In this document: one piece after another, positions 14,961 to 40,069 of the stretch
Layout of the letters: every line of letters starts with the position of its first letter
How positions within the stretch are numbered: the first letter of the stretch is position 1
Assembly (NCBI RefSeq): GCF_006345805.1
Contig: NW_021835993.1
Coordinates: 1-64,000, forward strand
Source: Octopus sinensis
Taxonomy: Eukaryota
Direction of reading: 5' to 3'
DNA length: 64,000 nt
The notes under the pieces: model-generated
Seen by the model: the letters and a program-made list of their open reading frames with translations, nothing else
What the model was told of the DNA's origin: nothing
Databases searched by the model: none
Program-made: the position numbers and the translations under genes

Positions 14961-14984
14961 GACAACTACAATGAAGAACAATGC

Positions 14985-18500: not shown

Positions 18501-18653
18501 ATATTAGTTATTAAAAGGACTATTAAAAAGCAATAACTTGTGTCTTATTTTTGTGACAGTTAATTTCTAAAAATGGTTGTTGCGAGTTTTAGGAAACAAA
18601 ATCTTATCTATAAAAGTCCAAATAAATTATCTATCTAGCTAGCGATTATTAAA

Positions 18654-19644: not shown

Positions 19645-19879
19645 ATGAAATTGTAGATTTATATATATTTGTGGCTTCATCAGTTGGCGCTGCAATTCTT
19701 ATTACCATTTTCATTGAAGGTAATAAAAAATATTTTATATAAGTTTTAATTCACTGGACCAAATCAAAAAAATCTAAAGAATTATATGATAAAATGAATA
19801 CTTACCTAACTGGATTTTCAACTCGTACTCGTAATTAACTAAGACAAATAAAATTGGATTTTAAATTATTTATTAGTTA

Positions 19880-20080
19880 AAAATATTGGATGAATCATCG
19901 GTTAAGATAATTAGACTACTACTTGAGAACACAAGACTATCTGTGCGGACAGAAGGAGCAACTTTCCGGAGTTTAAAACCAACGATTGGGACACTCCAGG
20001 GTGATTCCCTCGTCCTTTTTTCTCAGCGTAAATGTAAACAAAACCGAAATCACGGAAATCAAAAGAGGAGAGGATATTAC
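19880..20080 (+). mobile_element. RTE-like LINE RT fragment (copy B ~47810-48010)
   Basis: IIRLLLENTRLSVR...IGTLQGDSL and KTEITEIKR parallel the RT at 31000-31320. Confidence 0.75.
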
Positions 20081-20844
20081 TCATGAGTAGGGCAACCAAA
20101 AGTCATATAAGTCATATTATTTTTTATTGGTAATATTGATGTTATTTCTATAATTAATAAACTATTATTATATTTTTTAATAGTTTTATTAATTTTTTTA
20201 GGTCTTATAGGTCATATTTTATGCCGTTAGGTCATATTATTTTTTTAGGTCATATTTTTTTTGTTAGGTCATATTTATATTTATTAAATCATACATTTTT
20301 ATTAATCTTTGTTTAAATTTTGACAATAACACGTTTTCACACGTTTTGGTAGTTGGCCGCTTAAATATTATAGATTTTTACATGCCGAAACAAAAGCAAT
20401 CTAACAATCAAAAGTTAAATAAAATAATTAAACGATACCCGTCTGAATTTCAGATTGATTCAGCTGGACGTTTATTTTGTTCGAAATGCTCAGTTTTTGT
20501 TAATTTTACGAAAACGTTTAATGTTGTGCAGCACAGGGAAACTACCCGGCATAAAAAGGAACAGAAAAAATTTCAAACCCAACTCAACACTTTTCCGAAA
20601 CTTGAAGCAAAGAAAAATTTCGGAATTTGCTTAGTCGAAATGATGACGAAGGCGAATATACCTCTTTACAAAATAAGAAATGAACACTTTATTAATTTTT
20701 TTAATAATCTCGGATTTACTGTTCCCAGCGAAAGTTGGTGCAGAAATATAGTTCCAGATTTGCAATATCAATTGATTGAAATGCTTAAAACAATTATTTC
20801 TGGAAAGAATATATTCATATTTATTGATGAAACGGAAATCAATA

Positions 20845-22588
20845 CAGTCCGACCCCCAAATGGGGCACCAAGTGCCCCAAAATGCGGGGGTGCTCCAAAA
20901 ACAGGGGTTTGTTATTTTTTTAAAAATTAAACCATTAATAAACATCAAAAAACATTTTTACTAAAATATTCAGTTATTTTCTTTTTATTTGTAGAGTTTT
21001 GTCTGATATTGTTCGTCAATTTCAGCCGAAAATCAAAAAAATCTCGGAGCATACTTGGTGCAACATTAGAAATTTTTTCTTCTAAATTGTTAAGCAGATC
21101 TTTTGTTTTTGCTACGACATTTTCACTATTTTCGGTTTCTGAATATGTATCATAAACATTATTGTTCATGTCTTCGCATTCTCCATCAATTGTTTCGTTA
21201 ACAACTTGATCTAAATGTTCATCTGTTAGACAGTTTTTTGTTGCATAAGAATCACGGTTCCTGTCGATTTTCTTCCAACAATTAACAATACTTTTAGCAT
21301 CTATTTTCTCCCATCCTTTTGAAATTAGCATCATAACCTGACGCAAATTTAATTTACCAATAGAATGTGTAAAATCGTTTTCGAAATCTTGAAAACATAA
21401 AAATTCCATTAAGAAAGAGGAATAATAATCTTTAAAAATCTTGATTATTCCCATATCCAAAGGTTGTAAATAGGGCGTTGTATTTTTCGGCAAAAATAAA
21501 AATTCGATGTTCGAACATTCGGCAGTTTTATGGCATCCCGCATTGTCAAGTATTAATAATATTTTTCTGTTGTTTTTGCAAAACGATTCATTTATAAGTG
21601 TAAGCCAACTCATAAAAGTCTTTCCAGTCATCCATGCATTTTGAGAAGATGAATACAATAACCCAAAATCTTGAACATCAAAATTTTTTAGACACCGAGG
21701 TTTTTTATATTTTCCAATAATCAATGGATTAAGTTTTTCCCCGATTAAACTGCAGCATAGAAGAACAGTGAGTCTTTCTTTCCCTTGTTTATAACCAAAA
21801 CACGGTTCGCCTTGTTCAACAAATGATTTTTGAGGAGTTCTTTTTATAAAAAGCGCAGTTTCATCACAATTAAATATATTCTCAGGTCCATATTTTAATA
21901 CTTTCTGGTCATATTTTTCAAAATAATTTTTCACATAAGATAAATCACATGAAGCTTTTTCACCACATATTGACTTGAATTGAAGTTCATGCCGCAATTT
22001 AAATCTATCAAGCCACCCATTGGAAGCTTTAAAAGAAGTAAATCCAATTTTTGAAGCTGTAACTAAGGCAATTTTTTTCAAAATAGGGCCTGAAATCGGA
22101 ATTTTATCTACGCGTAGTCTTTGAAATATTTCAAAGACTTGATCATCAAATTTATCTTTATCGGCTTTAAATGTGTCATATTCCTCAGAAATAGTATTGC
22201 CGTGTTGCAAGAAAGGTACAATATTTCGTTTTATTCTTGATATTGTTCCTTTACTTGTGTTGTACTTTTTCATTAGTTGCCTCTCAGATAAATTTTTCTT
22301 CAAAATTTCTTTAGCAATCTTCAATTTAGTTTCGTAATCCATAACCACAACAATAAAAATATAAATTGAAAATAAAACAAAAAATAATTAATTTATTATA
22401 ATTTTATTTTATTTTTAATTCCTTATAAATGATTTTATGGTGCCCCAAAAATTCCATAATTTTTTATCGATTTTTATTTTTTTTCTGCCAAAATGTACTT
22501 TTGGAATAAAGTGCCCCAAATTGCGGGGGTGCCCCAAAATCCGAGGGTGCCCCACCCCTGGGGTCTGCCCCATTTTGGGGTCGGACTG
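20845..22588 (-). mobile_element. Young pogo/Tigger element, copy A only
   Basis: TIR CAGTCCGACCCC(C/A)AAATGGGGCA with TA TSD. Copy B has the empty site AATCAATAAACAG at ~48736-48748. Confidence 0.97.
20945..22348 (-). CDS. pogo/Tigger transposase (CENP-B HTH plus DDE_1), intact 467 aa
   Basis: ASNGWLDRFKLRH, NCDETAL, KERLTVLLCC, LDNAGCH, LQPLDMGII. Confidence 0.95.
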   Translation of the reverse strand: MVMDYETKLKIAKEILKKNLSERQLMKKYNTSKGTISRIKRNIVPFLQHGNTISEEYDTFKADKDKFDDQVFEIFQRLRVDKIPISGPILKKIALVTASKIGFTSFKASNGWLDRFKLRHELQFKSICGEKASCDLSYVKNYFEKYDQKVLKYGPENIFNCDETALFIKRTPQKSFVEQGEPCFGYKQGKERLTVLLCCSLIGEKLNPLIIGKYKKPRCLKNFDVQDFGLLYSSSQNAWMTGKTFMSWLTLINESFCKNNRKILLILDNAGCHKTAECSNIEFLFLPKNTTPYLQPLDMGIIKIFKDYYSSFLMEFLCFQDFENDFTHSIGKLNLRQVMMLISKGWEKIDAKSIVNCWKKIDRNRDSYATKNCLTDEHLDQVVNETIDGECEDMNNNVYDTYSETENSENVVAKTKDLLNNLEEKISNVAPSMLRDFFDFRLKLTNNIRQNSTNKKKITEYFSKNVF

Positions 22589-24551
22589 TAAACAGAAATT
22601 TGTTAACGTTCTTTGTGGGACTATTGAAAGTCCTGAAAAAATTTATTTATTAAATTGTTTGGAAATTGAAATTTGTGATGCATCTGCAATTTGTAGAATT
22701 GTGGATGACACAATTCGAATTTATGATATAAAAAGGGAAAATTTTTTGTTATTTATTTCTGATGCTGCCCGTTATAGGACTTTAGCAGCGAGTACATTGA
22801 AGGTCATGTATATTAAAATGATTCATATAACTTGTTTTGCTCATCTTCTGCACAATTTTGCATTAAAAATTAGAGCACATTATAAATATATTGACGACTT
22901 AATCTCGTCTATCAAAATGTCGATTGTAAAAAATCCCTCCCGGAGGAGTCTTTTTACAGTTATTGGACTTCCACCTGATGTTGTTCTAACAAGATGGGGC
23001 AGCTGGTTGGACGCAGCAAAATATTATAGTCAACATCTTTCAAGAGTTCGCGAAATTGTCTTATCCTATCCAAATTGTGGAAAGATTGTGATGAATGCGA
23101 AAAATGCTGTTAGCACTGAAAATTTGGAGAAAAATCTGGCAGAGTTAATGGCTTCATACAACCCTATTATTGATGAAATCAGAAAATGCCAAGAAAAATT
23201 TTATACAATTAAAGATGCAATTGAATTCATTGATTCCGTTAATTTTGGTGAGGATAATTGTGACTTTAACAAGTATTTTTTAAAGCGGATAAGTATGTTA
23301 CCATGGACGAATATCAAAAATGCTAGAATTTTTAGTATTTCTCCAGAAACATTTATTTACTTATGGAAATGTTCTTCAACATCAATATCTGCAGAAAGAA
23401 GCTTTTCTATGCTGAATAAATTGCTCGAAAAGGATAGAAACTTCAAGCCAGAAAATATTAAATATTATATGATGCAATATTATAATAAATTCATTGATTG
23501 AAATGTTTAATTTTTTCATATTTTCAAATTCAGAATATCTATAAATCAAAATTCGATAGGTCATATTTTGATTTTTTAGGTCATATTTTAATATTTTTAA
23601 GTTATATTTTAGAATTTTAAAGTCACAAAGTCATATTTTTTACGGTCATATTTAACTTTTTTAAGGTCATATTTCTGGTTGCCCTACTCATGAGGAGAGG
23701 ATATTACTTGACAAATCCTTTTTCGGTAGGCGTTAAGTGCCTTCTGAGCGTTTCTATATTCGATTGGAAGTTCCAACTGACCATAATGCCATGCTAAGAC
23801 CAAAAAGAAGGTAAATGATCCCCATTTTTCAACGGTGTTGTGCCAGAAGGACTCTTCGCCTTACAGGCAGTGGAACGATAACGAGAATTGAACCCGTCTA
23901 GAAAACTAGCCTCCTTCGGATTCGAACTCACAATTGTCCAGATCCATTATCCATAGCTAGAGCTTGTAAAGTATTTGCCATCGAAAGTGTTCGTGTCGAG
24001 GATGTCCATGCTTATTTTTACTGCCAATCAGTTTTTAATGACTCTGGAAAAAGTTAGTCCACATTTGTAATTGTAGGAGGCTGTCAATTCGGTGGTGAAT
24101 TATACATACAGGTTGTGCTATAGCAGTCAACTGAAGGAAAATGAGCAGGATTGTCAGCAGAAGTCGGTTTGTGTCTTTTTACATTTGTCGTAAAAATCCT
24201 CACTTTCGGTAGTCAGTAATTAGATTATTTTGATTATTATAAACATTTCGACTGAAGGAATTTACACTAAAATGTAATTTGTTTTTTAAATATGGGAAAA
24301 ATCTTATAATCACTGCTTTTTGACAAAGAAGGCAGTTGATCATTTTGCTAAAAAAATTTTCAATAGTTCTATTCAACTACCTCCGAAATTAGATTGCAGA
24401 TACACGAAAAAGACATTTGAATATTTTTATTTATCATTTAATAATATTTTTCAAGTTATGTTAAATACAGAAATAATACATTTGCATGGCAAACATGGTT
24501 CATGTTGTTAATTAGTCAATTTTATATCCCAATTATTACTAAATAATGTAG

Positions 24552-24960
24552 ATGCCACTGTCAATATTAAAAAATGCCACAAACAATCCGATGGTATTCC
24601 TAATGTATTAAAATTCAGCTTATTGAACTCAAAAACGGTGATACGTACAACGGCCATTTAATCAGATGTGACAACTTTATGAATATTTATTTGAAGGAAG
24701 CTATCTGCACGTCGAGAGTACACACTGTTTATATATTTAGGGACGGAGACGAGTTTTGGAAACTCAACGAGTGTTACATTCGTGGGAATGCTATCAAATA
24801 TCTCCGAATTCCCGACCAAGTACTCCATCACACACAAAGTGACGCATCCCGCCGAAATGACCAAGGAAAGGGAAAACGGCCTCCCAAAAAAACTCAAAAG
24901 GCTAAGCCAAAACGTACTTTGCTTGATTTTTTATTTTTAGCAAAGTACCAGAAGACCTAA
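24552..24960 (+). CDS. LSM4: U6 snRNA-associated Sm-like protein LSm4, copy A
   Basis: [14 protein letters not shown]|[33 protein letters not shown]|[25 protein letters not shown]. Introns of 25, 23/24 and 27 nt lie at positions recalled for vertebrate LSM4. A 1-codon upstream exon is possible. Confidence 0.95.
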
Positions 24961-25891
24961 TTTTTTGATTGATTTGTTTTTCCCATATTTGTTAAGACTA
25001 TTATTTCTTATAACGAAAAATGCGCTTTTCTAGGCTTATTCGTTTATTTCGAGTTTTTTATTAGTCCTTCTAATAGAATATACCAGATCTAGATTATTAA
25101 AATTATTTTGTGGGTTTTCTGTGTCCCTGAACTAGTATGTGAATAAATGGTAGGGAAATTACTATTCTGTAATAAGAATTAAACCGAATTCTAAATTGAT
25201 TTTGCTAGAAAGGATTATTCTAAATAAACAGTCAGTTAGTATTACATATTTTGTAGGGGAGACACAAAAGGAGTAATTCACATAGACATGTCAATTTGGA
25301 ATGAAATGCTTTACTCTTCAAAGATGAAAAATACACCTGGAAAACTCCTGACTGTCTTCGATAAGATCTTATTTTAAAAAATATCGAAATTTCCAAGATT
25401 AAAAAATAATAAGAAGTGTAGATATGTTCGGATAAGTTAAATGCAGACTTCCGCAATAAGTCATATTCCAGAATATTTGAACATTTTATCCTCGATGAAC
25501 ATGAGTAATATGTATTACTAAATTACTAGAAATTGTCATTTCACAACAATTACTCGTTAAAATTCAAATTAGATCAATTACGCACAAAAGAAAGTTTAGC
25601 GATGTCCTATTCTAGGTGAGGTATCCTTTGAGACCAAGGAATACTGACTGCCTGAGATCTACTTTACTCCTGACGAGGGAGGTCAAAGAGACGAATGGGG
25701 ATATTCCAGTAGGGGGTGGGACTGCAGTCCACTCACGTGTATTGATGATTTAGGTGTTGAATTGATCAATAATACACATTTTGAAAAATGAATTAATTTA
25801 TGTTATTTTTGTATATATTTTGTTTATTAAAATTAATGTGTCAACCCTTTTTATAAATCCGGAAATTAAGAATAAAGGAATAATTCTACGC

Positions 25892-26419
25892 ATGCCCCCC
25901 GCCGTATTTCCATCGTTCTGATATTACTTATAGAAGAAACAGCCTGCAAAAAACGACAAATCAAAGTCCGGCAAAGGCGGAAATGTCCAGAAAGGAGCTA
26001 AAAACTTAAAGACCACTGGGAAGAAAGCCCCTCTAATGCCGGCAAAGAGCGTCAGCAAAGCCAAAAAGAAAGTAATCCAGTTGATGTCTACAGTTAGAAA
26101 TGGAATAAGAAACAAGAAAAGGAAAAGCTCAACAGCCAATTCCTATTCACAGCCGATAACTATCAAAAACTGCTCAAAGAAGTTCCCAAAATGAAAATCA
26201 TCACACCAAGCATGTTGGCAGAGAAATTCAAAATCACCGTTTCTCTTGCCAACCTCGCTCTCAAAATGCTTCTAGAAAAAGGTCAGTTCGACTGCCTGAG
26301 GCTTAGGCTTGATTCAGCAGGAAATAAAACACTCGACAATAAAAGTGTATAGCACAATCAAGAAGGAGGCAGCGTCGACGAATATTCCTTGTGGCGACAC
26401 TGTTCTCCAAACGACTTAA
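25892..26419 (+). CDS. RPS25: 40S ribosomal protein eS25, copy A
   Basis: Introns of 30, 26 and 25 nt. MPPA|KKQ...KAKKK|KWNKK...KLLKEVPKMKIITPSMLAEKFKITVSLANLALKMLLEKG|LIQ. Confidence 0.92.
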
Positions 26420-27019
26420 TTAATTTTACTTTCTGGTTAAATCGATGTGTTTAGTCTACTTCCTAAGTTATCAGACTGGTTAGAATTCAGATTTATTTAA
26501 GCGTTCTTGTGGTTTGTTTACATTTTATGGTTTAGGTTAGATCTATATTATATATCATATCATTTTTGTTTATTATAAAGACGGTCTGAGTGTTGAAAAA
26601 AAAATAAGGGAGTTGTTCAATGGCATCCCAAACCAAGGACTTCCCTAAAAGGAAAGGTACTCATAAAGCAGGATGCTTTCTTTCACTCCGGCAGAGACCG
26701 ACTGGGTCTAGAATGAAAGGGAAAGCTGCCTACTTTAGAGTTCTTTTGACAACGTCGTTGAGTTGAGTCTGACGATTAATTTTACCAGCACTTTTTTTGC
26801 ACGGGAATCTGTCTAGCGGGTGGATATTATATAGAGGTAACTAAAGCTTTTATTCGTTTTAAAAAATCGTTGATTACTTTTTGAATTGTTTACTTTAACA
26901 TATTTTTCGAATATGGAATATTTGGGACTTATATTTATTGAAGAGCGTCAAATTTTATATTATTCAAAGTTTCAAAAATATTGTTTTTGTTTGAATAATT
27001 GAAATAATGTTCCCACGTT

Positions 27020-30000
27020 TTATGGGGCTTCAGGCCCTTCTAATGCTGTCCGGTCCACAATAAGGTCACTGGGGGAATTGTTATCGTGGAGGTCCACATC
27101 GTTTGCAGACAGTGGAAGTGACGAAAAAGAGGAATTATGACCTCCTTGAACGAGTTAGGGCTGATGCACCAAAGTCCATGTCACATTCCCTGTGTGATTA
27201 CATAAAATAACTGGTCACAAAATACCACACGGGGTACTTAAGACAGTTTGGTGTAAATAACTGTATATTCAGTCAACTGTTCTTAAGAGGACTCTGGAGA
27301 GTATGTCGTTTGATACCCGTCAATCCAATTCTTTCCTGATATTTAGTTAGCAAGAGTGGCAGGACTGCATTTTTTCGGAGGTCTACAGAGTCAGAGAAGG
27401 ATGAGAAGAAGGGAAGGAGGTGCGTAGAGTGCCACCGCTTGGTCACTTCGAAGAGTCAGGACTTACAATAGTAGTAGCACTTTCACAGGACCCAAGAAAG
27501 TTATGTTGAATTGAATATAGATGTCTCGCTTAGAACGTCCATCCAATCAGTGACAATCAAGAAAAGGATGTAGAACATGGGCGCTAAACACAGACATGGC
27601 ACAAAAGTTGACAACCACCTAGTTTCGAATGAGACAAATAGTCGTATCGATAGAAGAAAGAAACTGGAAATATCAGTAAACCCGTCAGAGGAGTTGACTT
27701 TCATACTACAATACAAAAAGAAGAGGTGTCTATAGGTGACCTCTCTGTTGAAGATAATTGTTTGATTTAACAATCATTCGAACTATCTATTATGTCTTTC
27801 AATGTAAGAGGCCTTAAATCGACTTGGAAACAACATGCACTATGTGAGGACATGAAGAAATACAGGATCTCGGTTGGATATCTACAAGAAACCAAAGTGA
27901 AACTCGGGGATGAGCAAGTCTATGGGGACTATCGCCTTATTCTGCTGCCCTCTGAATGCGGACACTATGGCCAAGGCTTTGTGGCACACAAACACTTATC
28001 TACTTGTATTCATCGCTGCTGGAGACTCACCGATCGAATATCTGTACTACAAATAAATACCGGACACAAATCCGGAATGCTTTCCATCATTAATGTCTAT
28101 GCCCCCCAAAGTGGCAGGATTGCCAAGAATCTCGACGAACTAGACTCCTTTTACGAGGAGCTAGTTAGGATACTCACAAGTCTGGAGGATTCGTCCATTC
28201 TATTCATTGGATTGGAATGCCAAAGTTGGCATCCGCTTTGGGGACGAGGCCGATAAGGCTGCCTTATTTGATTCCCGATCATATGGAGGATCTCGGGTTG
28301 ACAGTGATCATAAAATGGTCGTTGGACGTTTCTACATCAAGAAACACCATGCGCCGCTCAAGACGCTCATCTGGTACAAGGAAAAGATATCTCACGGAAA
28401 AACTGTTGTACTCCTCCCTCACTCGGGAAAACTATCAAAAATCATTGGAGAGCTATATCTCTTGTATAGGAACGGGTCTCTCCTCGAAGAACACATGGGA
28501 TTCCATTATGAATGGTATCTATATGGCTGCTGACGAGCACATCGGGAAGCAACCAAATAATAATCAGTCCGGGAGATGCTGCCACCCAGATGTTCGGGCG
28601 AAAATCGTTGAGCAAAAGGATCTAAAGCTCAGAATCGAAAACAAGAACGATCATAATAACAAACAGGCACTGAGGAGGAAACTTATTAAGAAACTTATGA
28701 GCGACCAATTATTTTTTGTTTTCAAGTTTGAGAATACTATCTGTCGAATATTTATAAAAACTTTGGAAATGTTTAATTTCCTTTAAAAACTTAATTTATT
28801 CTTTAAAATCTTTCGAAAAATAATAAATAAGTGCCTTTTTAGGGAAAAAATAGGGTGCCTCTAACATTTGGACGGGACTATAATTACAAAAGAATGTTGG
28901 ATTCATCCTTAATATTATTTAAAAAATTACCGGAACATTTTTTAATACAATTTTTTTATTACCTAAAAAATAGTGCTATAGAAACCCAAATGTTAGAGTC
29001 TTCAAATGGAAAAACATTACAACGAATCAAACAGATAAATCAAGTAAGAATAGTTAAATAAACACAAAAATCATAATAATTGGAATAATTATAACTAGAA
29101 TTTGACGAATTCTGATCAAATGAACATGATACACATTACCCATGATTTGCTAAATTCAGAAAAGAGTAACAATGTGCCACCTGAAGCTCGGGAACAAATA
29201 AGCGCAGATAAATGGATACATAAATATGGGTTAGTCAACAATAAGCTGTCATGGGACTTTATTCTTAAAAAAATTGGATTCAAAAAAAGCGAGGAATATG
29301 TTTACTCTTTGAAAAAACCAGTCTGTTCTCGATACAGTATAGACTTGTTTGTGGAAGTTTTTTCTTCAATCGACGGTAGAACATATAACGTGACAAGAGA
29401 TAATAAAAAAATGTTATATTTATTTAATAAATTGAAAAAAATTCAAGAACTATATCAAAAACGTATCGAACGTATCTATATTCCGGTAGTCGAAGAGTTT
29501 TTGGGCTAATTGTCGAAAATTTTGTGATTATTGTTTTTGACATGAAAACTCAATCTTATGAAAAATTTAACCTATATAAAGCCGTAGCCACAGATATAAT
29601 AAGAAGTCAACTAATAAATATAAATAAATTTAATTTAATCTGGTAAAATTTTTGAAATTAATTTAAGGGTTGCAGCTAAACCGATAGTATTTTCAAAAGA
29701 AATAGTTCAGTATAGGAAAGACTATTAAATGGATTGAGAACAAAAATTCTTTATCAGAAAGGAATGTAGAATACACTGTCACAGCATTAGAATTGGCTGC
29801 AAATGAAAAAGTTTAAATTTAATATTTGAATCTTTAGACCGAAGCAGTTTATTTATTCACTGAAGGAGACTCATCTCAAAACTGTTCAAATTTTATTAAC
29901 GATAAGGTTTTAATTTAAACCTTATATATCTAAATAATTTTTAGTTAAAAAACAATATTGTTCTTAATATTGTTATGTTTGATTCAATAAACTTATAAAA

Positions 30001-31980
30001 AACTTATTTTTAAACTTAAACTTATTTTATATAAACTTATAAAAAGAAAAATTAATATTATAAAAATAAAAATTATTCTTAAAAACTTATACTTTGACTC
30101 TATTCCAACAAAAACTTAAACCATATCCGAACCCTAACCATTTATTAATTTAAACTCTAACCTTAATGCCTACTCTAACGCCAACCCTAACCCTATCTTG
30201 AGGAGGAAACTCATTAAGAAACTAAACCGTCAGCACACTCTAGACACTCTGGAAACCCTTCTAAACGAAGTCGAAGGGCTCAAGAACGGCGCAAAAATGT
30301 TTTAGGCCATGCGTCTTCTCAAAAGAAGAAAACCCACCAAACTCAAAATTATCGATGGCATGGGAAAAACCATCTACAAACCTGCAGAGCAAGCCGAAAT
30401 AATTGCTGATCACTTCGAACGTCAATTTAATCTGAACACTGACGATATTGACCCCTTTACATGCACATCAGCACCTCTCAATAAGCCAATCGCAGTTGAG
30501 GAAGTCATCCAAGCTGCCAAAAAGCTTAAGAATTGTCGGGCAGCTGGACCTGATAATATCAATGCAGAACTGATCAAGTATGGCCCAATGCTACTCATGG
30601 AAAAACTGACGACCTCGTTCAATGAGATGTTCGCAACCAATGACCTGCTCCCACTGGGCTCAGGCACACTCATCCCGATACAAAAGACCAACAAAACCTC
30701 CGGACCGGTGGAAAATCTCCGTCCCGTAATACTACTGAACACTCTGAGAAAACTTTTCTCACTCATTACACTCGGTCCCATAACCCGAACTGTTAATGAA
30801 TATCTCTCTCCCAGTCACAGTGGATTCAGGGCTGGAAGATCCACAGCTGATATAGTCTGGAGTCACAGATGGCGTGCGCTGTCCAGCAAAAATTTAAAAA
30901 ATCTACGGCTATCCTTGGTATCGGCTTTTGACTGTGTCCGTCGTGACCTACTTATCGGGGTTCTGGAAAGCTTCCTAGAGGTAGATGAAGTGAGAATGAT
31001 ACGATTACTACTTGCTAAGACAGAACTTTCTCTTCGTATTGGGTCAGTCTCCTCAAGGCGGTTCAAAACGAATGTCGGCACGCCTCAGGGAGACTCTCTC
31101 TCCCCTGCTATTTGTAATCTATCTGGAAGCCGCCTTGAGAGATTTGAGAACTTTCTATAATGATTCTATCACCGAAATTGCATATGCCGACGATGTGGAC
31201 TTTGCCTCGGACAACATAGATGATCTAATTCATCTACTAAACAATTCCCCACGGGTGCTTAACAAATGGTTCCTGATAATTAACACTTCCAAAACTGAAT
31301 TGACGGAGATAAAACGAATGGACACCAGAATTGGCGAAACATGGAGGAATGCCAACAAACTCGGCTCCCTACTTGAAGATAGCGAAGACATTTCTCGTAG
31401 AAAGATGCTTGCTACTGCGGCTCTGAGCAGAATACGTAAAAAATGGCTCCAAGCTTGGCCGATAAATCGGGCTCTCAGATCAAGGCTCTATAATGCATTC
31501 GTAAAGCCCGTTCTACTATACAACTCGTCAACATGGGAGATCTCGGACACTGAACTGAAGACTATAGACTCTTTTCACCGTAAACAACTACGTCTTTTAC
31601 ACGGAATACACTGGCCATCAAAATTAACAATCTATCTCTGTATAAACATTACGATGCTACGCCGTTGTCTCAAGAAATCGTTGGAGGTCGGTGGAAATTA
31701 TTTGGCCATATTTTGCGAATGGACCCCAGAGCTCCGGCCAATCGGGCAATGGACGATTATTTCTTTGAACATGGAGACAAATATCGTGGAAGACCTAGAT
31801 CCACTCTTCCGGCAGTTCTGGAGAGGGATCTCAAACTTCATGGCAAAAGTTTCAAAAACTTGGACGACCTAGAATCTTTGCGGGATCTCGCCTCCACAGA
31901 GAGGCATGGACAAGGATGGTCCAGAAGATTGTTTCGCTTGTGACACGTGTGGGATTATAACTTTGTTTATGTTCCTACGG
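27020..31980 (+). mobile_element. RTE-like APE-RT LINE, near full length, degenerate, split by a 1.5-kb insertion
   Basis: CCHC-knuckle remnant at ~27420. APE motifs SFNVRG, YLQETK, INVYAP, DWNAK and SDH. RT motifs GPDNI, LRPV, PQGDSLSP and YADD, then GHILR and RGRP. The frame continues across 28695/30224. Confidence 0.9.
28854..29998 (+). pseudogene. VWA3B: 5' fragment of a VWA3B-like gene with introns, embedded in the LINE
   Basis: ISADKWIHKYGLVNNKLSWDFILKKIGFKKSEEYVYSLKKPVCSRYSIDLF...DGRTYNVT matches recalled VWA3B ISSEKWLQLHGLKSNKLTLKQILSQIGF...GRPVASRYADGLF...DGRVYNLT. It continues into the first vWA domain through introns of 55, 25, 27 and 38 nt, with frameshifts at ~29500 and ~29715. 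Confidence 0.85.
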
Positions 31981-31993: not shown

Positions 31994-33684
31994 TAGGGGT
32001 GATAAAGTTGATAAAGTTAAATTTTAATATTTAAATAAAAATTTAATAAAACTGTTTTTATATTATTTTTAAACGTTCTATCTTTATATTTTAAAAAATT
32101 ATAAAGTTAAAAAGTTAAAAAAATAAATCGTAAGGTTAAATTTGTTTAACTTTATTTTATTTAATTATTTCAACAAATTATTATTATACGATTAAATAAA
32201 TATTAAGTTTTTGTTGTATGCCGCGTACTTCTATGTCTTATCTAACTAAAGCAAAATTAATTGTTAACGAATTCCCAAAGGAATTTCAGTTAAATAACAA
32301 CGATGAATTGTTTTGTAAACTATGCTTAACGTCAGTAAAGTGCTCGAAAAGCATTTTGTTAACCTCCACAGGATATCAAATAAACATAAAACTTTCGTTG
32401 GTAAGGATTTTCGATAATATATAGATCGTTTGACTACATTTTGCCAACAAAAATTAGATGAATCTGAAATTGGAAACTGGAATTTGAGGGTGACTAAGTC
32501 TTTTCTGAAATGTGACATTCCGCTAAATAAATTATCAATGCCTTTATTTGTTGATCTCTTCGAAAGCAACAAAATTTCCCTTCCTTCGCAATCACAAGCA
32601 AGGAATTTGCAAAATATATTGCAAATGAATACATAGGATCTTTTAGGGACAAATTCAAGTATTCCATCAAAGTTTATTTTCTAGAGAACAAAAAATTTTT
32701 ACAATAACCGATGAAACTTTTCATTTCCGATGCTGCACGGTATATGACATCCGGTATTGTTTTAATTAATTGATGGTTTAGCCGGGAAAATTTTAAAAAA
32801 TTTATATCCCAATCTTTTCATGTTAATTGCGTCACTCATATTTTGCATAATTGTTCAATGGAGGTCAGAAAATCTTATCCGGAAGTTGATGATGTGATAG
32901 CTAGCGTGCAAGCTTCTGTCAGGAAGAACCACAAGCGAAAATTGTTGTTTTACGAAATTGGAATTCCTCCGAAAGTTGTGTTGACGAGATGGGGCACCTG
33001 GTTAAAGGCTGCATCTTTTTATTCAAGAAATTTAATCTCAGTGATTAACATTTTTGATTTGATTGAGGACGAAGGAATACTAGTGACTGCCACAAAAATG
33101 GATTGAAAAGTGAAAAACTAGTAAAAAGCTTATGTGCAATTTCGCATAACTATTCACATATTCCAGGTTTTTCATATAGTAATTAATCTCATAGAGAAAA
33201 TATTACAACTTGAAAGTAACGAATGTACAATAGAATTTGCATATTCGACGTTAAGTACACCTGACTTAGGGAAGGATGAAGCAGGGATCAAAAAATATTT
33301 AGAGAAGAGAATTTTAGAGAGCGATATGACTAAAATTATTATTATGGATAATAAAAATATCTCTCCGGAAGATTATTCGTTACTTCAAAACTGTCAACCA
33401 TCCTCGGCATCTATCGAACGATGCTTTTCGCAATTTAGGAGTTTTATGAGGTCAAACAGAAACTTTGCTACACAAAATTTGGAAAATTATGTTATGTCCA
33501 TTTTCAATAAATAGTCTTTAAAGTATTTTATTGTTTCTTATTTATACTTTACAGGTTTAACCTGAGAATAAATAAAGTTAAATTTTTTTAATTTTAAGGT
33601 TAAAAATTTTGGTTTATAGGTTAATAAAGTTAACTTTTTAAGGTTAAATTTTTCAATTTTTAAGGTTAAAAAAATGTTGGCCCT
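31994..33684 (+). mobile_element. Degenerate CGGBP-like hAT transposon
   Basis: 8-bp TSD GTTATAAT (31986-31993, 33685-33692) and TAGGG ends. Fragments ISDAARY, VLTRWGTWL and SASIERCFS. Confidence 0.9.
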
Positions 33685-34086
33685 AGTTATAATAATAATT
33701 AGTTTGCATGTTCACAAATTCATAATGTTATCATTCAAGGCACTAATCACATCCAATCATCTTTAGTTGCTGATTGTCAGCTCCCACATATTTTGAGCAA
33801 ATATATAAGTTCTTCCATAATTTAAAATCGACACTTCTCTGAATTCGCTTAAAAAATATTTCCCATAAACTAAAACTCTTTTTTAACTACTGCTTTAACT
33901 AAAATACTGCTCTTTTTCTCATCTAGCATGTCATTTGTTTTCCAATTTGTGTTAAAGATAAATTAGAAATTGCAGATAATATTGCTGCTTACTTTGAATA
34001 TCTCTTCAGAAGAGATAAAAAACAACACTTAAAAAACTGAAAAGCAACACAAGTCCAGCAATCAATAATATTCACGGGAAACTGCA

Positions 34087-34445
34087 TTAAATAGTTAATA
34101 ATTTATGGAGTATTTGAGTGGGAGTGTGGGAATACTCGAACTAGTGAGTGATGCACATGTCCTACGCGCTGGACGATGTACTTGAACATTTGTTTGCAAT
34201 CCTCCACCGAGTACTCCCCGAATTTGACGTCCTCCCAATTCACCGCCCATTCCACCAAAATAAGGGGAATTCCTAGCACTCCCTTCATGGCCAGAACATT
34301 CCTGACCAATCTACGAGTCGATGATATTGTCCACTCTAGAATAACTGTGGAATGTACCCTTCGTGGTGATTGGGTCATGTCCTCCACTGAAATAGTCATA
34401 TCCGTCCACATTACTCAGCCAGTCTGCCCCACAGTCACTACTCAT
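34087..34445 (-). CDS. Small protein resembling the UBF/UBTF N-terminal SANT-like domain, copy B (open frame)
   Basis: Three exons with 22-nt and 25-nt GT-AG introns give MSSDCGADW...KEWTISSTRRLV...VNWEDVKFGEYSVEDCKQMFKYIVQRFEYSHTPTQILHKLLTI*. This resembles the recalled UBF segment MDWEKVAFKDFSGDMCK...FRTLTELI. Confidence 0.55.
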
Positions 34446-37163
34446 CTTCTATTATTATTATTTAAAGTATGTTTACACTATCAAAGAATTTAAATTAACT
34501 AATATCACCTTTGTGCCACACGTTAAGAGATTTTATTCACCAAGCTTCGAGTTTGCTCACAATAAATCTTTTAGTTTAAGAAAAGTTTTTACTTTTTAAA
34601 TATCTATCAGAATTCGACAGAATTTTCAATTTGTACCCCGTTTTTTAAAGCTACTCTTTTCTCCAATCCAGCTTAGATATTTTTCTGAAAAGTTCGAAAA
34701 ATTCCATTTTCTCCACATTTAGATTGACGAACCGCTTAGCAAGTTTATTTGGCATTACCTTCAATAGGCTTTCCAGAACATTTCTGTCGGACCGATGTTG
34801 TTTCAAATGGCTTAGAGCACATGACTGACCGATAGATAGGTTTCTGATAAGAGATTTCTTCTCTTGAAAAAATTGTGTGGCTGGCACGAACAAAACCTTA
34901 GTCACTTAAGTGCTTATAGCAACGCGGAAGTGCTATTTACTACTAATACTTACATCAATCAATTTTTGACGTATGATTCAGTAAAAACTTTTTGTCGCAC
35001 TTTTAAACCTTTGAATAGTGGAATATCGCCAGAAGTCGATCTTCCTACATGAAAACCGCTATGGAAACCGGATAGAAATAGTTCCTTCGAGGCTTTATTC
35101 TCTGTGGAGTGATAATTGCCAGAACTTTCGGTAGGCAATTCATAATATTTATTAGCCTGAGGTTCTCCACTTTTTCTTTAGCTTTGTTCGGCTTTTAGAC
35201 AGGGATTAGTATTCCTCGTCCCAGGGGTGAATAATCGTTTGTTGTAAACATCTCATTGAAAAGGTCAGTAATGATTATTTTGAGCAGGGCAAAAAAGTTT
35301 TTTGAGAAAAACAAGCCGACGTGACTGCCCCAAGTTGTAAGGTTGTCTAACAAACGAACGAGTGTCAATGTTTAATACAAATATCAGTCTTAGGTTAGAA
35401 CTAAAGTTAGTTTTAGGGTCAAAGTTTGGTTTTTCTCATATAGAAATTAAATCATATCCTGAAACATCAGAAGCAATAAAATTCTTTAAAACAATAGAAT
35501 TCCTCAGGGTGATGAGAAAAAAGCGCATAACAATAAAATATTTTTAGAATAAAAAAGTTTACGTAAGTTTTAAAGTTCTCTATGTTAACAGAATCCGCGG
35601 CCGTAGAGACTACATTGGGGGACTAGTTAAAATTTTATATCAAACTCTTTTGGGTTAGGAATGTTCCTTATTGAGCAGTTCTTTTAAGATTTAATTTTTA
35701 GAATTTAATCAAAATATTAGGTCCGAATTTATTAAATAAAAATCGAATGTTTTTAAATATGTGTGGCTTCGGCTATCAAGTCCCTTAGTCTAAATTACCT
35801 TATTTCTTAGTTCGTTTTCTTGACGTAGTTTTTGTATTTCCAACTGTTAGATTGCCAATTCGGCACTATTGAGTGTGTTTCGTGGGTTTACCTTGAGTTT
35901 TCGGTCAGAAAAAAGGTCTCGTTTTCTTCTCTTCTTGTTTCTGTAATTCCTCTTTTAGGAATTTAATTGCCTTAAGGCTGCCTGCTTATATTTGGATATT
36001 AATTCAACTTTTAAGCCATACTGATAATGTTCTTACAGACTCCCATCCAGTAAACATAGGAGCCATACAGTCAACCCTCTATTTATTGCAACTAATGGGA
36101 CCGACAAAAATAGTGGGAAAAATGGAGGTAGTAAAAAAGAAGGTTTAAAGTTTGAATGTCATCTTATCATGTTTTTTTAACTAGTTTGCTATTTTTTGTT
36201 TCGAAAGGATTTATTAGTCAAAATAATGTTTTTATTTGAGAATATTTTTAAGAACAACAGTTGGATAATCTAATGATTTTTTTCGTTCTTTGTTTAGTAT
36301 GTTTTCGTTAGTTTTCAATGCAACTAGCAATCATTCGAAAAATGTTCGATTTCAACAAAAATGTTTTGAAATTGTTTAAGTTGTTCACAGCATCTTCCAA
36401 TTCAATTTTTTAATTTTCAGTATCTTCATTTTCAATATCTTCTAGTTCCATTTCACATTTCTCCAAGTTTTCATAATTGTTAAGAATGCTGTCGTCAATA
36501 CATGGATTTTTTTCTGATCTGATCGTGTAAGTCGATCCTTTATTCTTAAGTCGAGCTCTTGGATTTTTTTCTGATCAGCTACATCAATAATGTTTAGTTC
36601 ATTTAGCAATTTTCCGAATCCCTCGATTTGACACGAAAAATCATCAATAATTCCACTTGTGAAGATTATTTTATTCTAGCAATTTTTGATAATCTTAAAA
36701 GAAATATTCTGCCTCCCGCCCTGGCTCAGCCTCCGCACATGCCGAAACAAAAAAATAACAAAGTATGCCTAATTGGAGAACACCTGCCTTTTCGTCCCCT
36801 GGCTTTCGAAACGAGCGGGATAATCGGCCCAAAAGCTCTTGAGTTCCTTTCGGAAATCGGCTTGATGATCTCAAGGAAGAGTCACGAGAAACGTGAGTCT
36901 AGTTGGCTTTTTCAGCGCATTTCGCTCGCGATATTGCGCGGAAACTGCCTATCTATTCGCGCGTCCTCTCAATCAAAGAATTAACATCATAAATTTACTT
37001 AATTAAAAAAAAAATAATAAAAAAAAAAGCATACGATTTAAAAATTACTGCATCTTTTATATTAACCTGTTTAAGTAGCGATTCAGCATGTGTTGGGAAA
37101 TCAATTTCGTTCACAACATGAGAGAGTAAATAATGATTACATATCAAGACTTGAAGCACTTAA

Positions 37164-37640
37164 TTTTTTTTTTTTTTTTTTTTTTTTTGAAATGACAGTT
37201 TATAAGGTAAAGAAATCACTAATTAAGAGGCGGAACCGCAGCCGAGAGGAGGATCGAGGAACAGTTCCCCCTTAGAACTGCGAGAGAGATGCGCTCAAAA
37301 AGCCACATCAGTTCACGGGGGTCGTTCTCGCCCTTCCCAATGACCTTCCGATCTTCGAGAGGAAACGGAGAGTAGACGGGCCAAGTACACCGGAAGTTCC
37401 ACTGACACCGGTTCGAAGATGAAACGGTCCATCAGGGAGGCGTACTTAGATGCCTTCTTCGTCTCCGCCCTCTTGGCTGCTGAGCCAGCCTCGACCGCCG
37501 ACAAGGAAAGACATGATGATGCGAAAGTATCAGAGCATGTCGCATCCCAGACGATTGCTTTCCCGTTCTTGTAGGGAAAGAGTGAGACCCCGTCAGGTCT
37601 CTTACCATCCTCCCTTAGAAGGCCAGGAGGCTCCAGCTGA
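37164..37640 (-). mobile_element. 5'-truncated CRE-clade insertion present only in copy B
   Basis: Poly(T) at 37164-37188. LEPPGLLREDGKRPDG...WDATCSDT...FEPVSVE. Confidence 0.9.
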
Positions 37641-39980
37641 CTTGAGTTTTTTGGAAGAAACAATAGCTCAATAAATTTACTCTGATTACTAATTTTATGA
37701 TTGCGAGGTTTTAAAATATTAATAAATTTTAATAAAAATTACATTTCTGAAGTTCTTTGGTTGTTCTCTTCAGTAAATATCTAAAATTATTAATTTTTTC
37801 TTTACTATTTGAGAGATTGAGCTTTTCCGCAAACCAGCATAGCATCAAAATCATTAATTGAACGTAGCGTTTTATGATTTTATTCAAAAGTTCACGTAAA
37901 ATGGTTAATCAAACTATTTTTAGCGATAAAATTTATTAAAAAATGTTAATTAAAATTTTTAATTTTCATTATTAAAAATAATTGTCTTGCTATTCGTGAA
38001 GCGGAATTAAACATAGAACATGTTTTGTGTTAACTTAAAACTAATTTAAATCAGCAATCAGCAAATATCAAACTTCAATGTATTTTAGCATTTAAGCATT
38101 AATACAGCTTCCTCAAAACAATAGTATCGCAACTCTCTTTCCTTGAGGATGGCATCATTATAAAAGGCACCACCGGATTGACAAAAACACGTGATTAATT
38201 TTTTAATCAATCAAGCACTTAACTTTATCTATTTACGACCGCAATCTATTATTAATTTATATTCAATTTGGGTTAGCTAATACTTCTTTAACTTCATTTA
38301 TAAAAAAATAAATATTTTTCAGATACATTTTTATTAAATTTTTGATTTTCTTAATTGTTTTACTAATTGATTAAAGTTTGTTTTTCAAATTAATCTAGCT
38401 TGGTGATTTGTTTTGGTTTTCTCAGTTTTAAAGTTAAAAAAGTTGAAAAAATAAAATGTACTCTTGAGCAAATATGTATTTCAGAAATGGTTTTGCTAAA
38501 TATTGACAATAGTCAATATTTATACTCAAATTGGGCCGTTTCGACTTAATAAAGTCGGCATTTTAAACAATTTTTTATCCTGAATGAAAATCAAAGTAAA
38601 AATCTGGCATTGACGCGTAACTTAATTTTATTGTAAGAAAATATTTTTAAAGAATATATTTTTAAAAGAACCTATTTAAGTAATATTATCTGACTTTCTC
38701 GGGCAAACTGGTCAATGAATTAACAAAAAATTAGATTTTAGATTAAACTGATATACAGTCAACCCTCTCTATAGTGAACCCTCTCTATAGTGAACAGGCC
38801 ATATTAATGCAATCTACAATAACAAATATTAGTAATTCTCATTAATATATTTATTATAAAATGAATACCACGTTTAAAAATGTATAATATCATTTATTTA
38901 AATATTTTTGTGTTCACTATTAAAGAATAATGAACGTCAAATTTTTGTGAACATAAAAATATTAAATTTAATATTTTTACATATATATTTAAAATTCTTT
39001 AAAATGAATAAACTACACGTTCTACAGTTGTTAGCATGGTGGAAAATCGAAAACGCCTGTCATTTTTTCAAAAGAAGGAAATAATCGAATTTTATCATAA
39101 AAATAGACATTACACACAGCGCGATTTATCCCTTTATTTCAATGTTTCTCTGGGCTGCATAAACAAAATTTTAAAAAATTCTGAAGGAATACTTAATGTT
39201 CAAGATGACCAAAAAAAGAAGAAAATTTAATTGCCAAGTCTCAACCATTCGACAGAGATTTATTTGAATGGTTCGTTAAAAAACGATCATTTGGATTTAC
39301 AATCAATGAATATCTTTTGAAGTCCATGTCTCTAAAAATGGCGAAAGTTTGTAATATTCAAGGATTTCAAGCATCAAATGGATGGCTTGAGAAATTTAAA
39401 AATCGATATTGCATTGCTTCCCGTGCTTTATGTGGGGAAAATCAATTTGTTGAAACCTCTGTGATTGAAAATTTTACAGAAAGCCTCAATAGAAAATTAG
39501 AACAATATTGTTCAAAAAATATTTTTAATTTGGACGAAACTGGATTGTTTTTTAAACTTTTGTCGAACAGAACATTAGCTGTTGACTCGGACAAAAATCT
39601 GTCTAATAAACCGATAAAAGAAAGAGTAACTGTTATGTTTTGCGTTAGTATGATGGGAGAAAAACTTGACCCATTTGTTATTGGAAAAGCCAAAAATCCA
39701 CGCTGCTTTAAAGGAAGAATAAATTTAATTAATAATTTACAAGTGGAATACAAATCAAATAAAAAAACATGGATGACATATGGCTAGTGAATATGAAGCT
39801 AGTGAATATGCGAAGGCGCTTGAAATGGTTTCTTGAGAATGATTATGAACAAAGAGGAAAAGTATACGAAATACAAAAATTTTAAGAAATTATCAAACTA
39901 ATCATTCTCAAAAAATCACCGATTACATGATTAAAATCTCTAAATAATCTTTGTAATTATCTTAATAATAAAATGGTATG

Positions 39981-40045
39981 GTGTGTGTCTGTCTGTGTGT
40001 CTGTCTGTCTGTGTGTCTGTCTGTCTGTCTGTCTGTCTGTGTGTG
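39981..40045 (+). repeat. (GTCT/GT)n microsatellite near the Helitron 5' end
   Basis: Direct reading of the sequence. Confidence 0.9.
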
Positions 40046-40069
40046 CACACCAACTTCAAATTGGCAATA

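Follow-up and report, generated by a model that had tools for sequence, protein, structure and literature searches.

In grasses, gene fragments reportedly move as filler DNA through the repair of double-strand breaks, as described by Wicker et al. in Genome Research in 2010. In the human genome, templated insertions have been divided into two classes: class 1 shows a target duplication, a poly(A) and a LINE-1 cleavage motif, whereas class 2 lacks all of these and has been attributed to break repair (PMC5110952). Breaks can also be filled by telomerase, which has been found to insert interstitial telomeric repeats at such sites (PMC2246262). Here we analyse a 1503-bp insert in a LINE, situated in the first 64 kb (the window) of the "Octopus sinensis" contig VCDQ01007225.1. 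The insert is real and looks like an ordinary break-repair patch, which alone reveals no new mobilisation route. The first-pass annotation had raised an uncharacterised route of gene-fragment mobilisation, a proposal that went too far given that patches of distant sequence at breaks have been described (PMC5110952, PMC11702581). The features of the insert and of its host LINE are as follows.

27771..28695, + strand: 5' part of the host LINE (APE endonuclease domain and linker), from ORFs and frames and an alignment of APE+RT homologues
28671..28695, + strand: left copy of the 25-nt LINE duplication, T at position 14
28696..28878, no strand assigned: insert segment i, 183 bp, AT-rich
28879..29994, + strand: insert segment ii, copied from a VWA3B-like locus, on the basis of its match to L002 13232-14358
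29995..30198, no strand assigned: insert segment iii (204 bp), AT-rich and containing short repeats of the AAACTTA type
30199..30223, + strand: right copy of the 25-nt LINE duplication, C at position 14, as in the LINE copy on contig L001
30224..31993, + strand: 3' part of the host LINE (linker, reverse transcriptase, C-terminal region and 3' UTR), from Pfam RVT_1
31994..33685, no strand assigned: putative non-autonomous hAT-like element nested in the LINE 3' end, termini TAGGGG...GCCCTA
33694..33699, + strand: last bases of the (AAT)n tail of the LINE

The insert (28696-30198) lies between two copies of a 25-nt direct repeat, TGAGGAGGAAACT(T/C)ATTAAGAAACT, which are identical at 24 of 25 positions, are spaced 1528 nt from start to start, are not of low complexity and coincide exactly with the break in the LINE reading frame. 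Cutting out 28696-30223 (the insert and one repeat) brings ...KQALRRKLIKKL and NRQHTLDTLETL... into a single frame that aligns across the junction with APE+RT LINE proteins of ~1000 aa, and a 677-aa LINE query is 43% identical over 96-98% to ~1000-aa proteins with PF03372 and PF00078. The host LINE therefore has the organisation of a non-LTR retrotransposon, possibly RTE- or Jockey-like in clade, with an APE endonuclease followed by a reverse transcriptase in a single ORF. This copy has decayed: its 5' part is spread over three frames with an internal deletion within the APE domain, and its 3' part has at least two shifts of frame and is interrupted by an in-frame stop codon at 30303-30305. 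Contig L001 carries another copy of the family, which differs from the 3' part by 1.3-2.0% substitutions and has no insert at the site, making it a family-level empty site. That copy has an inverted 5' end, classic for twin priming, with 12 nt of overlap and a ~11-bp duplication, and shares with the window copy the 3' end ...GGAATGTGTTATAATAATAAT, beyond which the flanks are unrelated. Within the repeated stretch it also has 18 nt (GTGCCAGAATACAACGAC) that both window repeats lack, a common absence indicating that one and the same LINE sequence gave rise to both 25-nt copies. The split LINE frame and the 25-bp repeats were part of the first-pass annotation and are borne out here, with the two LINE halves belonging to one copy rather than to different sources. 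Two separate LINE fragments that overlap by 25 nt by chance are rejected in view of the common deletion and the continuous frame. Target-primed insertion, moreover, is not expected to give the 3'-truncated LINE that such a pair of fragments would involve.

Towards its 3' end the LINE is interrupted by a second element (31994..33685), which we read as hAT-like from its TIR-like ends and a hAT-like C-terminal ORF; it gave no Pfam match. An 8-bp target duplication, GTTATAAT, borders it at 31986-31993 and 33686-33693, and the L001 LINE 3' end reads GTTATAATAATAAT without the element. The LINE as a whole sits precisely where the two copies of a ~20-kb tandem duplication meet, as delimited by self-BLAST:

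7229..27770, + strand: copy A, stopping at the LINE 5' end
33700..53921, + strand: copy B, beginning directly after the LINE tail

Homology between the copies stops at 27770, and copy B differs from copy A by 0.18-1.0% substitutions (101/17844 overall, or 0.57%). Copy A contains LSm4, RPS25, a PHD+RT non-LTR element and a hAT transposase gene split by a pogo-like element. Tc1, pogo and hAT elements, several LINEs and one Pif1/Helitron-like fragment are present across the 64-kb window.

Segment ii matches positions 13232-14358 of L002, a different contig of the same assembly that bears a fuller VWA3B-like gene, with 23 substitutions over 1112 aligned nt (2.07%) and 5 gap events. It is made up of the following parts.

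28879-28912, + strand: final 11 codons of the upstream gene with the stop, followed by intergenic spacer
28990-29043, + strand: candidate short upstream exon, with a 55-nt GT..AG intron (29044-29098) behind it
to 29642, + strand: exon 1, followed by an intron at 29643-29667 (25 nt)
29668-29810, + strand: exon 2, followed by an intron at 29811-29837 (27 nt)
29838-29906, + strand: exon 3, followed by an intron at 29907-29944 (38 nt)
to 29994, + strand: exon 4, broken off mid-exon at this point

The upstream ORF in L002 stops at 13265, and segment ii starts 34 nt ahead of that stop codon. Splicing the three GT..AG introns from the L002 paralogue gives one continuous ORF of 283 aa, and tblastn aligns the L002 gene collinearly with residues 47-656 of amphioxus VWA3B, against only ~48-300 for the window fragment. 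In an exhaustive search, the ORF at 29120-29506 proved 95% identical to XP_029655067.1, 'VWA3B-like [Octopus sinensis]', with 30-39% identity to VWA3B of amphioxus, snail, limpet and whale; phmmer returned E = 2e-19 to 1e-12 against source-named VWA3B proteins (amphioxus, Bulinus, whales and sea star). The similarity is collinear and extends over the N-terminal repeat and the first VWA domain of VWA3A/B proteins. A 245-aa conceptual translation of the insert had no Pfam match at E<=1 and the insert translation had none in the PDB, while the next gene model on L002 has PF13768 (VWA_3) in the precomputed list. A word-indexed protein search with the insert ORF returned nothing, missing even the 95% relative. 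Frame-breaking differences of +2 nt and -14 nt from L002 identify segment ii as a pseudogene, and the copied fragment is dead, without evident function. L002, by comparison, is intact and donor-like, and the direct donor would be either L002 or a closer paralogue.

These results refine the earlier description of the insert as holding five exons of a VWA3B-like gene, copied from DNA rather than from mRNA. The VWA3B relationship and three introns are upheld and the locus is now placed, with both breakpoints mapped, inside a longer intact gene; however, the part derived from VWA3B amounts to just 1116 of the 1503 bp, and the remaining 183 + 204 bp (a quarter) are not from that locus. Four exons are certain, and a short one upstream of the 55-nt intron is possible. 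A DNA-level copy is favoured as the simplest reading, because it retains every intron as well as intergenic spacer DNA and the last codons of the upstream gene; similarly, breakpoints 34 nt before a stop codon on the left and mid-exon on the right suggest that arbitrary genomic DNA, and not a transcript-shaped unit, was copied. Nonetheless, an unspliced, read-through RNA may have served as the template, since introns in this micro-intron genome are only 25-38 nt each.

The insert is thus a three-part composite, of 183 bp, 1116 bp and 204 bp. Segment i showed no homology to L002, no significant match in the 64-kb window or L001-L003, and neither an Rfam family above noise nor a tRNA, on which grounds a snRNA, tRNA or SINE head of a chimeric retrogene was rejected. 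It also had no match among JGI metagenomes, a search made uninformative by the absence of the VWA3B exon control from the same collection. Homology to L002 stops at 29994, and one nucleotide (T) is common to both sides of the junction between segments ii and iii. Towards the end of segment iii (~30127-30198) lies a degenerate C-strand telomere-like tract (..AACCCTAACC..CTCTAACC..CTCTAACG..AACCCTAACCCTA) with 4 CTAAC motifs per 100 nt, a density reached nowhere else in the 64-kb window (mean 0.066); its one TTAGGGTTAGGG match, with 1 mismatch, is not significant alone. The L001 contig has a 330-bp (AGGGTTAGGGTC)n array. The ends of the insert (TATGAG... and ...CTATCT) are linked by no inverted repeat and show no TIRs or Helitron 5'-TC/CTRR-3' ends, in agreement with the first-pass annotation, and they carry neither poly(A) nor an (AAT)n LINE tail, reading ...CCCTAACCCTATCT on the + strand and ...AATAATTGGTCGCTCATA on the - strand. 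No second copy of the insert occurs in the 64-kb window or in 69 kb of other contigs (L001-L003). A poly(A) signal at the right breakpoint (AATAAACT, then T) was also considered; what follows is AT-rich sequence rather than a poly(A) tail, and an AATAAA carries little weight there, being common in a genome with 27-34% GC.

Judging from its genes, the contig most likely comes from a dicyemid, a kidney parasite of the octopus, and not from the octopus itself. This reading follows from introns of 23-28 nt in housekeeping genes, and from a COX11 at most 58% identical to any other protein (55% to that of the octopod Argonauta). Introns measure 27 nt in COX11, 27, 25 and 28 nt in a serine carboxypeptidase gene and 23 nt in LSm4; together with those of the VWA3B-like gene (25, 27 and 38 nt) they are as short as dicyemid introns, reported at 26.2 +/- 1.9 nt for spliceosomal introns (PMC2222250) and at a mean of 38 bp (PMC6736024). 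The VWA3B-like ORF is merely 51% identical to a protein on an Octopus vulgaris chromosome, and divergence this high, seen also in COX11, is what dicyemid proteins would show relative to those of the host. In an exact-protein look-up of five window ORFs, COX11 alone was found. Introns of 25-38 nt in a seemingly octopus context had suggested horizontal transfer from parasite to octopus, which we reject because COX11, LSm4, RPS25 and the serine carboxypeptidase share micro-introns, so that the whole contig represents a micro-intron organism. This context, a micro-intron, TE-rich genome of dicyemid type, had been missed by the first-pass annotation. More broadly, the public Octopus sinensis assembly GCA_006345805.1 appears to include contigs of parasite DNA, several hundred kb to >1 Mb in length, and proteins such as XP_029655067.1 are consequently catalogued as octopus proteins. 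Proteins misfiled in this way can mislead comparative and horizontal-transfer analyses, a larger consequence than the insert itself.

We give about an even chance to the explanation that the insert arose when a staggered break was repaired and DNA, either captured or templated, served as filler, which is a known type of event. The duplication, the restored frame, the donor locus with both breakpoints, the retained introns and intergenic DNA and the lack of transposon hallmarks are observed; that there was a break, that it was staggered and how it was repaired are what we infer. An already defective LINE copy would have been opened by a double-strand break with staggered ends, or by a pair of nicks 25 nt apart, and the two 25-nt overhangs, filled in or serving as primers, would have produced the 25-bp duplication. 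The gap would then have been bridged by a 1503-bp patch from at least two, probably three, pieces: 1116 bp of genomic DNA from the VWA3B-like locus, whose donor was left intact on a different contig, and two short pieces, one of them the degenerate telomere-like tract. Such a patch might be either end-joined loose DNA or the product of a template-switching polymerase. In support of this explanation are the 25-nt duplication, the frame restored on removal of the insert and the origin of both repeats from one LINE; the preservation of the distant template at L002 13232-14358, where the 1116 bp lie within a longer, intact, spliceable gene; and the composite build with unrelated flanking pieces, typical of break patches. 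The insert also lacks TIRs, a poly(A) and an (AAT)n tail like that of the host LINE, and patches from distant loci and of telomere-like sequence are documented (PMC5110952, PMC2246262, PMC11702581). On the other side, a 25-bp duplication without a tail matches neither human class 1 nor class 2 cleanly, and the VWA3B fragment lies in the LINE orientation, as templating by RNA needs, although this has a 50% probability by chance. A 25-nt stagger is also produced by LINE endonucleases, a hint of retroelement machinery. Telomerase healing as the sole explanation was rejected: the polarity fits, yet the tract is too degenerate for an event ~2% old and a single near-perfect dimer carries no significance of its own.

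In an alternative that we consider unlikely, the patch is a reverse-transcriptase product. Either LINE nicks 25 nt apart received a template-switched RNA chimera, which would include an unspliced transcript reading through from the upstream gene into VWA3B, or the enzyme made a detour during the copying of the LINE itself, leaving the LINE RNA, copying other RNAs and returning 25 nt behind, so that the apparent 25-bp duplication would be a re-copy. Duplications of 10-25 bp are a signature of target-primed reverse transcription, and the one flanking the insert (24/25) falls within that range, as a target duplication of the variable length left by LINE-mediated retroposition. L1 duplications have been reported at 12-18 bp, and there is precedent both for template-switching reverse transcription and for templated insertion at breaks made by LINEs (PMC11702581). 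The host LINE family is or was active by this route, as the twin priming and ~11 bp duplication of the L001 copy indicate; the insert is in sense orientation to the LINE; and introns of 25-38 nt in genes ~80-200 nt apart make unspliced read-through RNA plausible. However, neither end of the insert has a poly(A) or (AAT)n tail, and retention of three or four introns and an intergenic spacer is not transcript-shaped. The presence of the 5' part of the gene without its 3' end is the reverse of ordinary retrocopies, and three switches followed by a return to the same RNA within 25 nt would be unparsimonious.

A copy of an unrecognised non-autonomous mobile element, with its ends in segments i and iii and a captured gene fragment between them, is in our view improbable. 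The sharp ends and flanking duplication, the lack of any relationship between segments i and iii and the gene donor, and the transposon-rich genome are all compatible with such an element, but the insert has neither terminal inverted repeats, Helitron ends nor a tail, and no second copy in the sequence searched. In addition, we know of no cut-and-paste superfamily with a 25-bp duplication (range 2-11 bp).

Similarly small is the probability that we assign to a pair of further scenarios, namely that the LINE acquired the gene fragment and then retrotransposed with it inside, or that the patch is a re-integrated small dicyemid DNA circle. The order of fragment first and LINE later is suggested by the 2.07% divergence of the fragment from its donor, against 0.57% for the LINE-bridged 20-kb duplication; if true, dicyemid LINEs would be vehicles spreading intron-containing pieces of host genes, and the same event could duplicate tens of kb of target. 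Dicyemids contain thousands of small DNA circles, with only mitochondrial protein domains found on circular contigs (PMC6543705), and an origin from such a circle (eccDNA), as raised in the first-pass annotation, would fit dicyemid biology; no sequence feature bears on it. An assembly artefact, whether from a chimeric long read or from misjoined sequence in a contaminant contig, is very improbable, for although coverage of parasite DNA in a host assembly may be low and some of the small indels against L002 could be sequencing errors, a chimera would not yield a precise 25-nt duplication with one diverged base, and 2% substitutions indicate a separate, aged copy instead of a misplaced piece of L002.

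As a single event, the insert offers a clean, datable case in which a gene piece, its introns and neighbouring DNA were copied into a repeat, in a group whose genome dynamics are almost unstudied and for which chromatin elimination and thousands of DNA circles have been reported. Like Pack-MULE and Helitron capture it moved an intron-containing gene fragment to a new site, but it has no TIRs or Helitron ends and its duplication is of unsuitable length. As in telomerase insertions, the G-rich strand of the tract would be joined to the 3' end of the right-hand break, with telomerase polarity; the window tract differs in being short and, for an event only ~2% old, heavily degenerate, suggesting that it was probably copied from an already degenerate tract. 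LINE-1-associated rearrangements (PMC11702581) likewise include LINE-type staggered breaks resolved with extra templated sequence, and tandem duplications that span tens of kb and whose junction is LINE-related, comparable to the A-LINE-B arrangement here. Those, however, are experimental or cancer events with a poly(A) L1, whereas the present case is germline-fixed, involves a LINE family whose tail is (AAT)n and not poly(A), and has the LINE as the target of the patch and not obviously as its agent. Grass filler DNA shares the copying of kilobase fragments of genes and introns into breaks, often in or beside transposons, with target duplications that are sometimes short and copies that decay into pseudogenes; it has been described in plants, and we found nothing comparable documented for dicyemids. 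Human TSIPs (PMC5110952), finally, resemble the insert in the use of a distant-locus template at an unrelated site with the donor kept, and they include cases with an intergenic or intronic donor as well as telomere-like patches; the insert described here is set apart by its 25-bp duplication without a tail, its three-piece composite structure and its large size of 1.5 kb.

The host LINE (27771-33699) is a decayed APE+RT non-LTR retrotransposon, and both sides of the 1503-bp insert (28696-30198) belong to this one element. The insert lies between two copies of a 25-nt direct repeat, TGAGGAGGAAACT(T/C)ATTAAGAAACT, at 28671-28695 and 30199-30223, which are identical at 24 of 25 positions. Removal of 1528 nt (the insert plus one repeat copy) brings ...KQALRRKLIKKL in frame with NRQHTLDTLETLLNEVEGLKNGAKMF..., and the resulting protein can be aligned over its full length with APE+RT proteins of ~1000 aa at 43% identity and 96-98% query coverage. 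The element is decayed: it is spread over three frames, the endonuclease has an internal deletion, and the 3' part shows an in-frame stop at 30303 and more frameshifts in the reverse transcriptase. P0028, an 'Octopus sinensis' gene model of chimeric make-up ('T-complex protein 1 subunit beta-like'), is 99% identical to the host LINE in its LINE-derived part, and the locus of that model (L001, on VCDQ01000492.1) holds a further member of this LINE family, inverted at its 5' end by twin priming, that runs uninterrupted through the insertion point (...CACTGAAGAGGAAAC GTGCCAGAATACAACGAC TCATTAAGAAACTAAACC...). One 18-nt stretch of the L001 copy is missing from each of the two repeat copies in the window, so that the 25 nt must have been duplicated from a single LINE sequence already deleted there, rather than representing two LINE fragments that overlap by chance. 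The first-pass annotation had described a LINE frame split by an insert between 25-bp repeats with one mismatch, and had named LINE halves from different subfamilies as grounds for refutation; its description holds, and the halves derive from one LINE. The L001 copy (8837-10701) has a 12-nt overlap at its inversion and a target duplication of ~11 bp.

The insert consists of three segments, of which the middle one (28879-29994) is VWA3B-like. An exhaustive search by phmmer, with the 29120-29506 ORF as query, recovered a single 95%-identical protein, XP_029655067.1 (P0116, 'VWA3B-like [Octopus sinensis]'), and ~60 remoter proteins named VWA3B or VWA3A by their sources; a word-indexed protein search with the insert ORF returned zero matches although P0116 was present in the collection, and its negatives are thus unreliable for short AT-rich ORFs. 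The P0116 locus (L002, on VCDQ01001615.1) is on a separate contig and carries a fuller gene, collinear with amphioxus VWA3B residues 47-656, in which removal of three GT..AG introns (25, 27 and 38 nt) yields an unbroken 283-aa ORF. The alignment of the middle segment to L002 covers 1112 nt and shows 23 substitutions (2.07%) and five gap events, and the homology ends sharply at both edges: the left breakpoint falls 34 nt upstream of the stop codon of a 181-aa upstream ORF, the right one within an exon of a gene that runs ~1.2 kb further. In the window copy the frame is broken by +2-nt and -14-nt differences. These breakpoints, retained introns and frame-breaking differences indicate that the middle 1116 bp is a pseudogenised copy of genomic DNA, made up of the tail of one gene, a spacer, and four or five exons of the next, introns included. 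A fuller locus and the breakpoints, which the first-pass annotation had proposed to map, are located, and its view of copying at the DNA level rather than retroposition from mRNA is favoured by the introns, spacer and upstream gene tail. Its VWA3B-like assignment stands for these 1116 bp and fails for the 183-bp and 204-bp flanks, which lack homology to L002.

Those flanks (28696-28878 and 29995-30198) gave no matches in the window, in Rfam or in the loci L001-L003, and neither of them holds a tRNA. The right piece closes with a degenerate C-strand telomere-like tract of ~70 nt, where CTAAC motifs reach four per 100 nt, a density seen nowhere else in the 64-kb window. A related interstitial telomere-like array, (AGGGTTAGGGTC)27, is found at L001 6988-7317; the twin-primed LINE copy there lies 1.5 kb away from it. 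The tract resembles telomerase insertion at breaks (PMC2246262) in polarity, its G-strand being joined to the 3' terminus of the right-hand broken end, and its degeneracy argues for copying from a pre-existing degenerate tract.

A ~20-kb tandem duplication has the host LINE exactly between its halves: copy A (7229-27770) ends on the base before the LINE starts at 27771, and copy B (33700-53921) starts on the base after the (AAT)n tail of the LINE ends at 33699. Unrelated sequences X and Y lie outside the two copies, and the resulting layout, X-[U]-LINE-[U]-Y, looks like a giant LINE target duplication, or LINE cDNA bridging a tandem duplication; comparable tandem duplications have been linked to LINE-1 in human cells (PMC11702581). 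Copies A and B differ by 101 substitutions in 17844 nt (0.57%; blocks 0.18-1.0%). Since the divergence of the VWA3B fragment from L002 is greater than this, the patch would at face value predate the arrival of the LINE at the site, with LINE and patch having moved together. We regard this as a lead and not as a result, weakened as it is by three possibilities: gene conversion between A and B, a direct donor other than L002, or an L002 that stems from another haplotype or species of dicyemid. The remaining features of the window are as follows.

3273-3617, minus strand, C2H2 zinc-finger protein gene
14775-17914 and 42707-45699, second non-LTR element with PHD finger and reverse transcriptase; APE domain not detected
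20845-22588, copy A only (also L001 20283-22024), pogo/Tc5-type transposon with DDE_1 and HTH_Tnp_Tc5 and an intact 467-aa ORF
24604-24957, LSm4 gene, in the 20-kb duplication
25934-26349, ribosomal protein S25 gene, in the 20-kb duplication
31994-33685, non-autonomous hAT-like element in the LINE 3' end, with ends TAGGGG...GCCCTA and 8-bp duplication GTTATAAT
37165-37640, copy B only, 5'-truncated GC-rich retroposon; 27-nt poly(T) on the plus strand, corresponding to a minus-strand poly(A) tail
39961-41470, copy B only, (TCTG/TGTG)n microsatellite, a tandem array of ~95-bp units (40068-41058), and repeats of ~100 bp
55014-55710, minus strand, COX11 gene
59911-61446, serine carboxypeptidase gene
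63070-63543, minus strand, Pif1-type helicase fragment (Pif1_2B_dom, E=2e-18)

The C2H2 zinc-finger, LSm4, RPS25, COX11 and serine carboxypeptidase genes are compact; LSm4 and RPS25 are each present twice because they lie inside the duplication. The site of the hAT-like element is empty in L001, where the LINE end is uninterrupted (...GTTATAATAATAAT). In copy A, pogo splits a hAT-like transposase gene that copy B keeps whole (469 aa). Only 0.17% separates this pogo from a copy on another contig, so that the family was recently active. The ORF of the PHD+RT element is intact in copy A (846 aa) and broken in copy B. The retroposon at 37165-37640 replaced 22 bp of target that copy A retains at 11138-11159, and is a LINE insertion with target deletion rather than duplication. 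An array at L002 22300-22748 is 80% similar to the repeats at 39961-41470. The Pif1-type fragment is possibly a Helitron remnant, with ~98%-identical non-coding relatives at 13823-14268 and 41755-42199, one per duplication copy.

The window corresponds to bases 1-64000 of the 'Octopus sinensis' contig VCDQ01007225.1 in GCA_006345805.1: an exact-protein match to the COX11 ORF falls there at the window's own coordinates, and the reverse complement of the matched locus agrees with the window base for base. The window, L001 and L002 are very probably dicyemid DNA that was co-assembled with that of its host. Introns of the window genes, whose families are confirmed by Pfam, measure 23-28 nt (27 in COX11, 23 in LSm4, and 27, 25 and 28 in the serine carboxypeptidase gene), and dicyemid introns 26.2 +/- 1.9 nt (PMC2222250); Dicyema japonicum, a resident of O. 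sinensis kidneys, has a LINE-rich genome that is 49% repeat and whose introns average 38 bp (PMC6736024). No known protein shares more than 58% identity with COX11 (55% for the octopod Argonauta), and the VWA3B-like ORF reaches only 51% against a protein encoded on a 41-Mb chromosome scaffold of Octopus vulgaris. Together, the micro-introns, the divergent proteins and the published intron sizes point to a dicyemid and not an octopus contig, L001 being tied to this origin solely via shared transposons (97-99.8% identity). A dicyemid origin makes horizontal transfer needless, and reduces an insert 'with its introns' to one with very small introns only. The contigs of L001 (1.29 Mb) and L002 (279 kb) are likewise filed as Octopus sinensis; if they are dicyemid, then XP_029655067.1 and similar RefSeq entries, among them the chimeric model P0028, are mis-assigned.

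With regard to mechanism, we give roughly an even chance to filler-DNA repair, in which a staggered break in the LINE would have been repaired with DNA acquired via end-joining capture or template-switching synthesis. The main rival, which we consider unlikely, is a reverse-transcriptase product of template switching on unspliced read-through RNA; in its favour, the 25-nt stagger is LINE-like, the insert is sense-oriented relative to the LINE, and twin priming is seen for this family in the L001 copy. Re-integration of circular DNA, raised by the first-pass annotation, would suit dicyemid biology; the one kind of protein domain reported on the circular contigs of the study concerned was mitochondrial (PMC6543705). 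Three features contradict a standard retrocopy: the insert has no tail, it keeps introns and spacer, and it carries the 5' rather than the 3' end of the gene. Cut-and-paste transposons and Helitrons are ruled out by the insert ends, which, as first noted, show neither TIRs nor Helitron termini, and by the 25-bp duplication. Target duplication lengths are superfamily-specific, which is the basis for setting 25 bp apart from cut-and-paste transposons.

The original observation is thus confirmed and its interpretation supported in part. Two by-products may prove more useful than the insert itself: the probable parasite contigs deposited under octopus, and the LINE that bridges the two copies of the 20-kb duplication. 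Plant filler DNA is a further example of distant DNA patched into breaks. The insertion of distant genomic DNA patches at breaks is a described class (PMC5110952, PMC11702581), into which the event fits, and the uncharacterised mobilisation route, suggested earlier for the case that such inserts are common genome-wide, would go beyond what this single event shows. Compared with known break patches, this insert is unusual both in pairing a long target duplication with the absence of a tail and in being a composite of three pieces.
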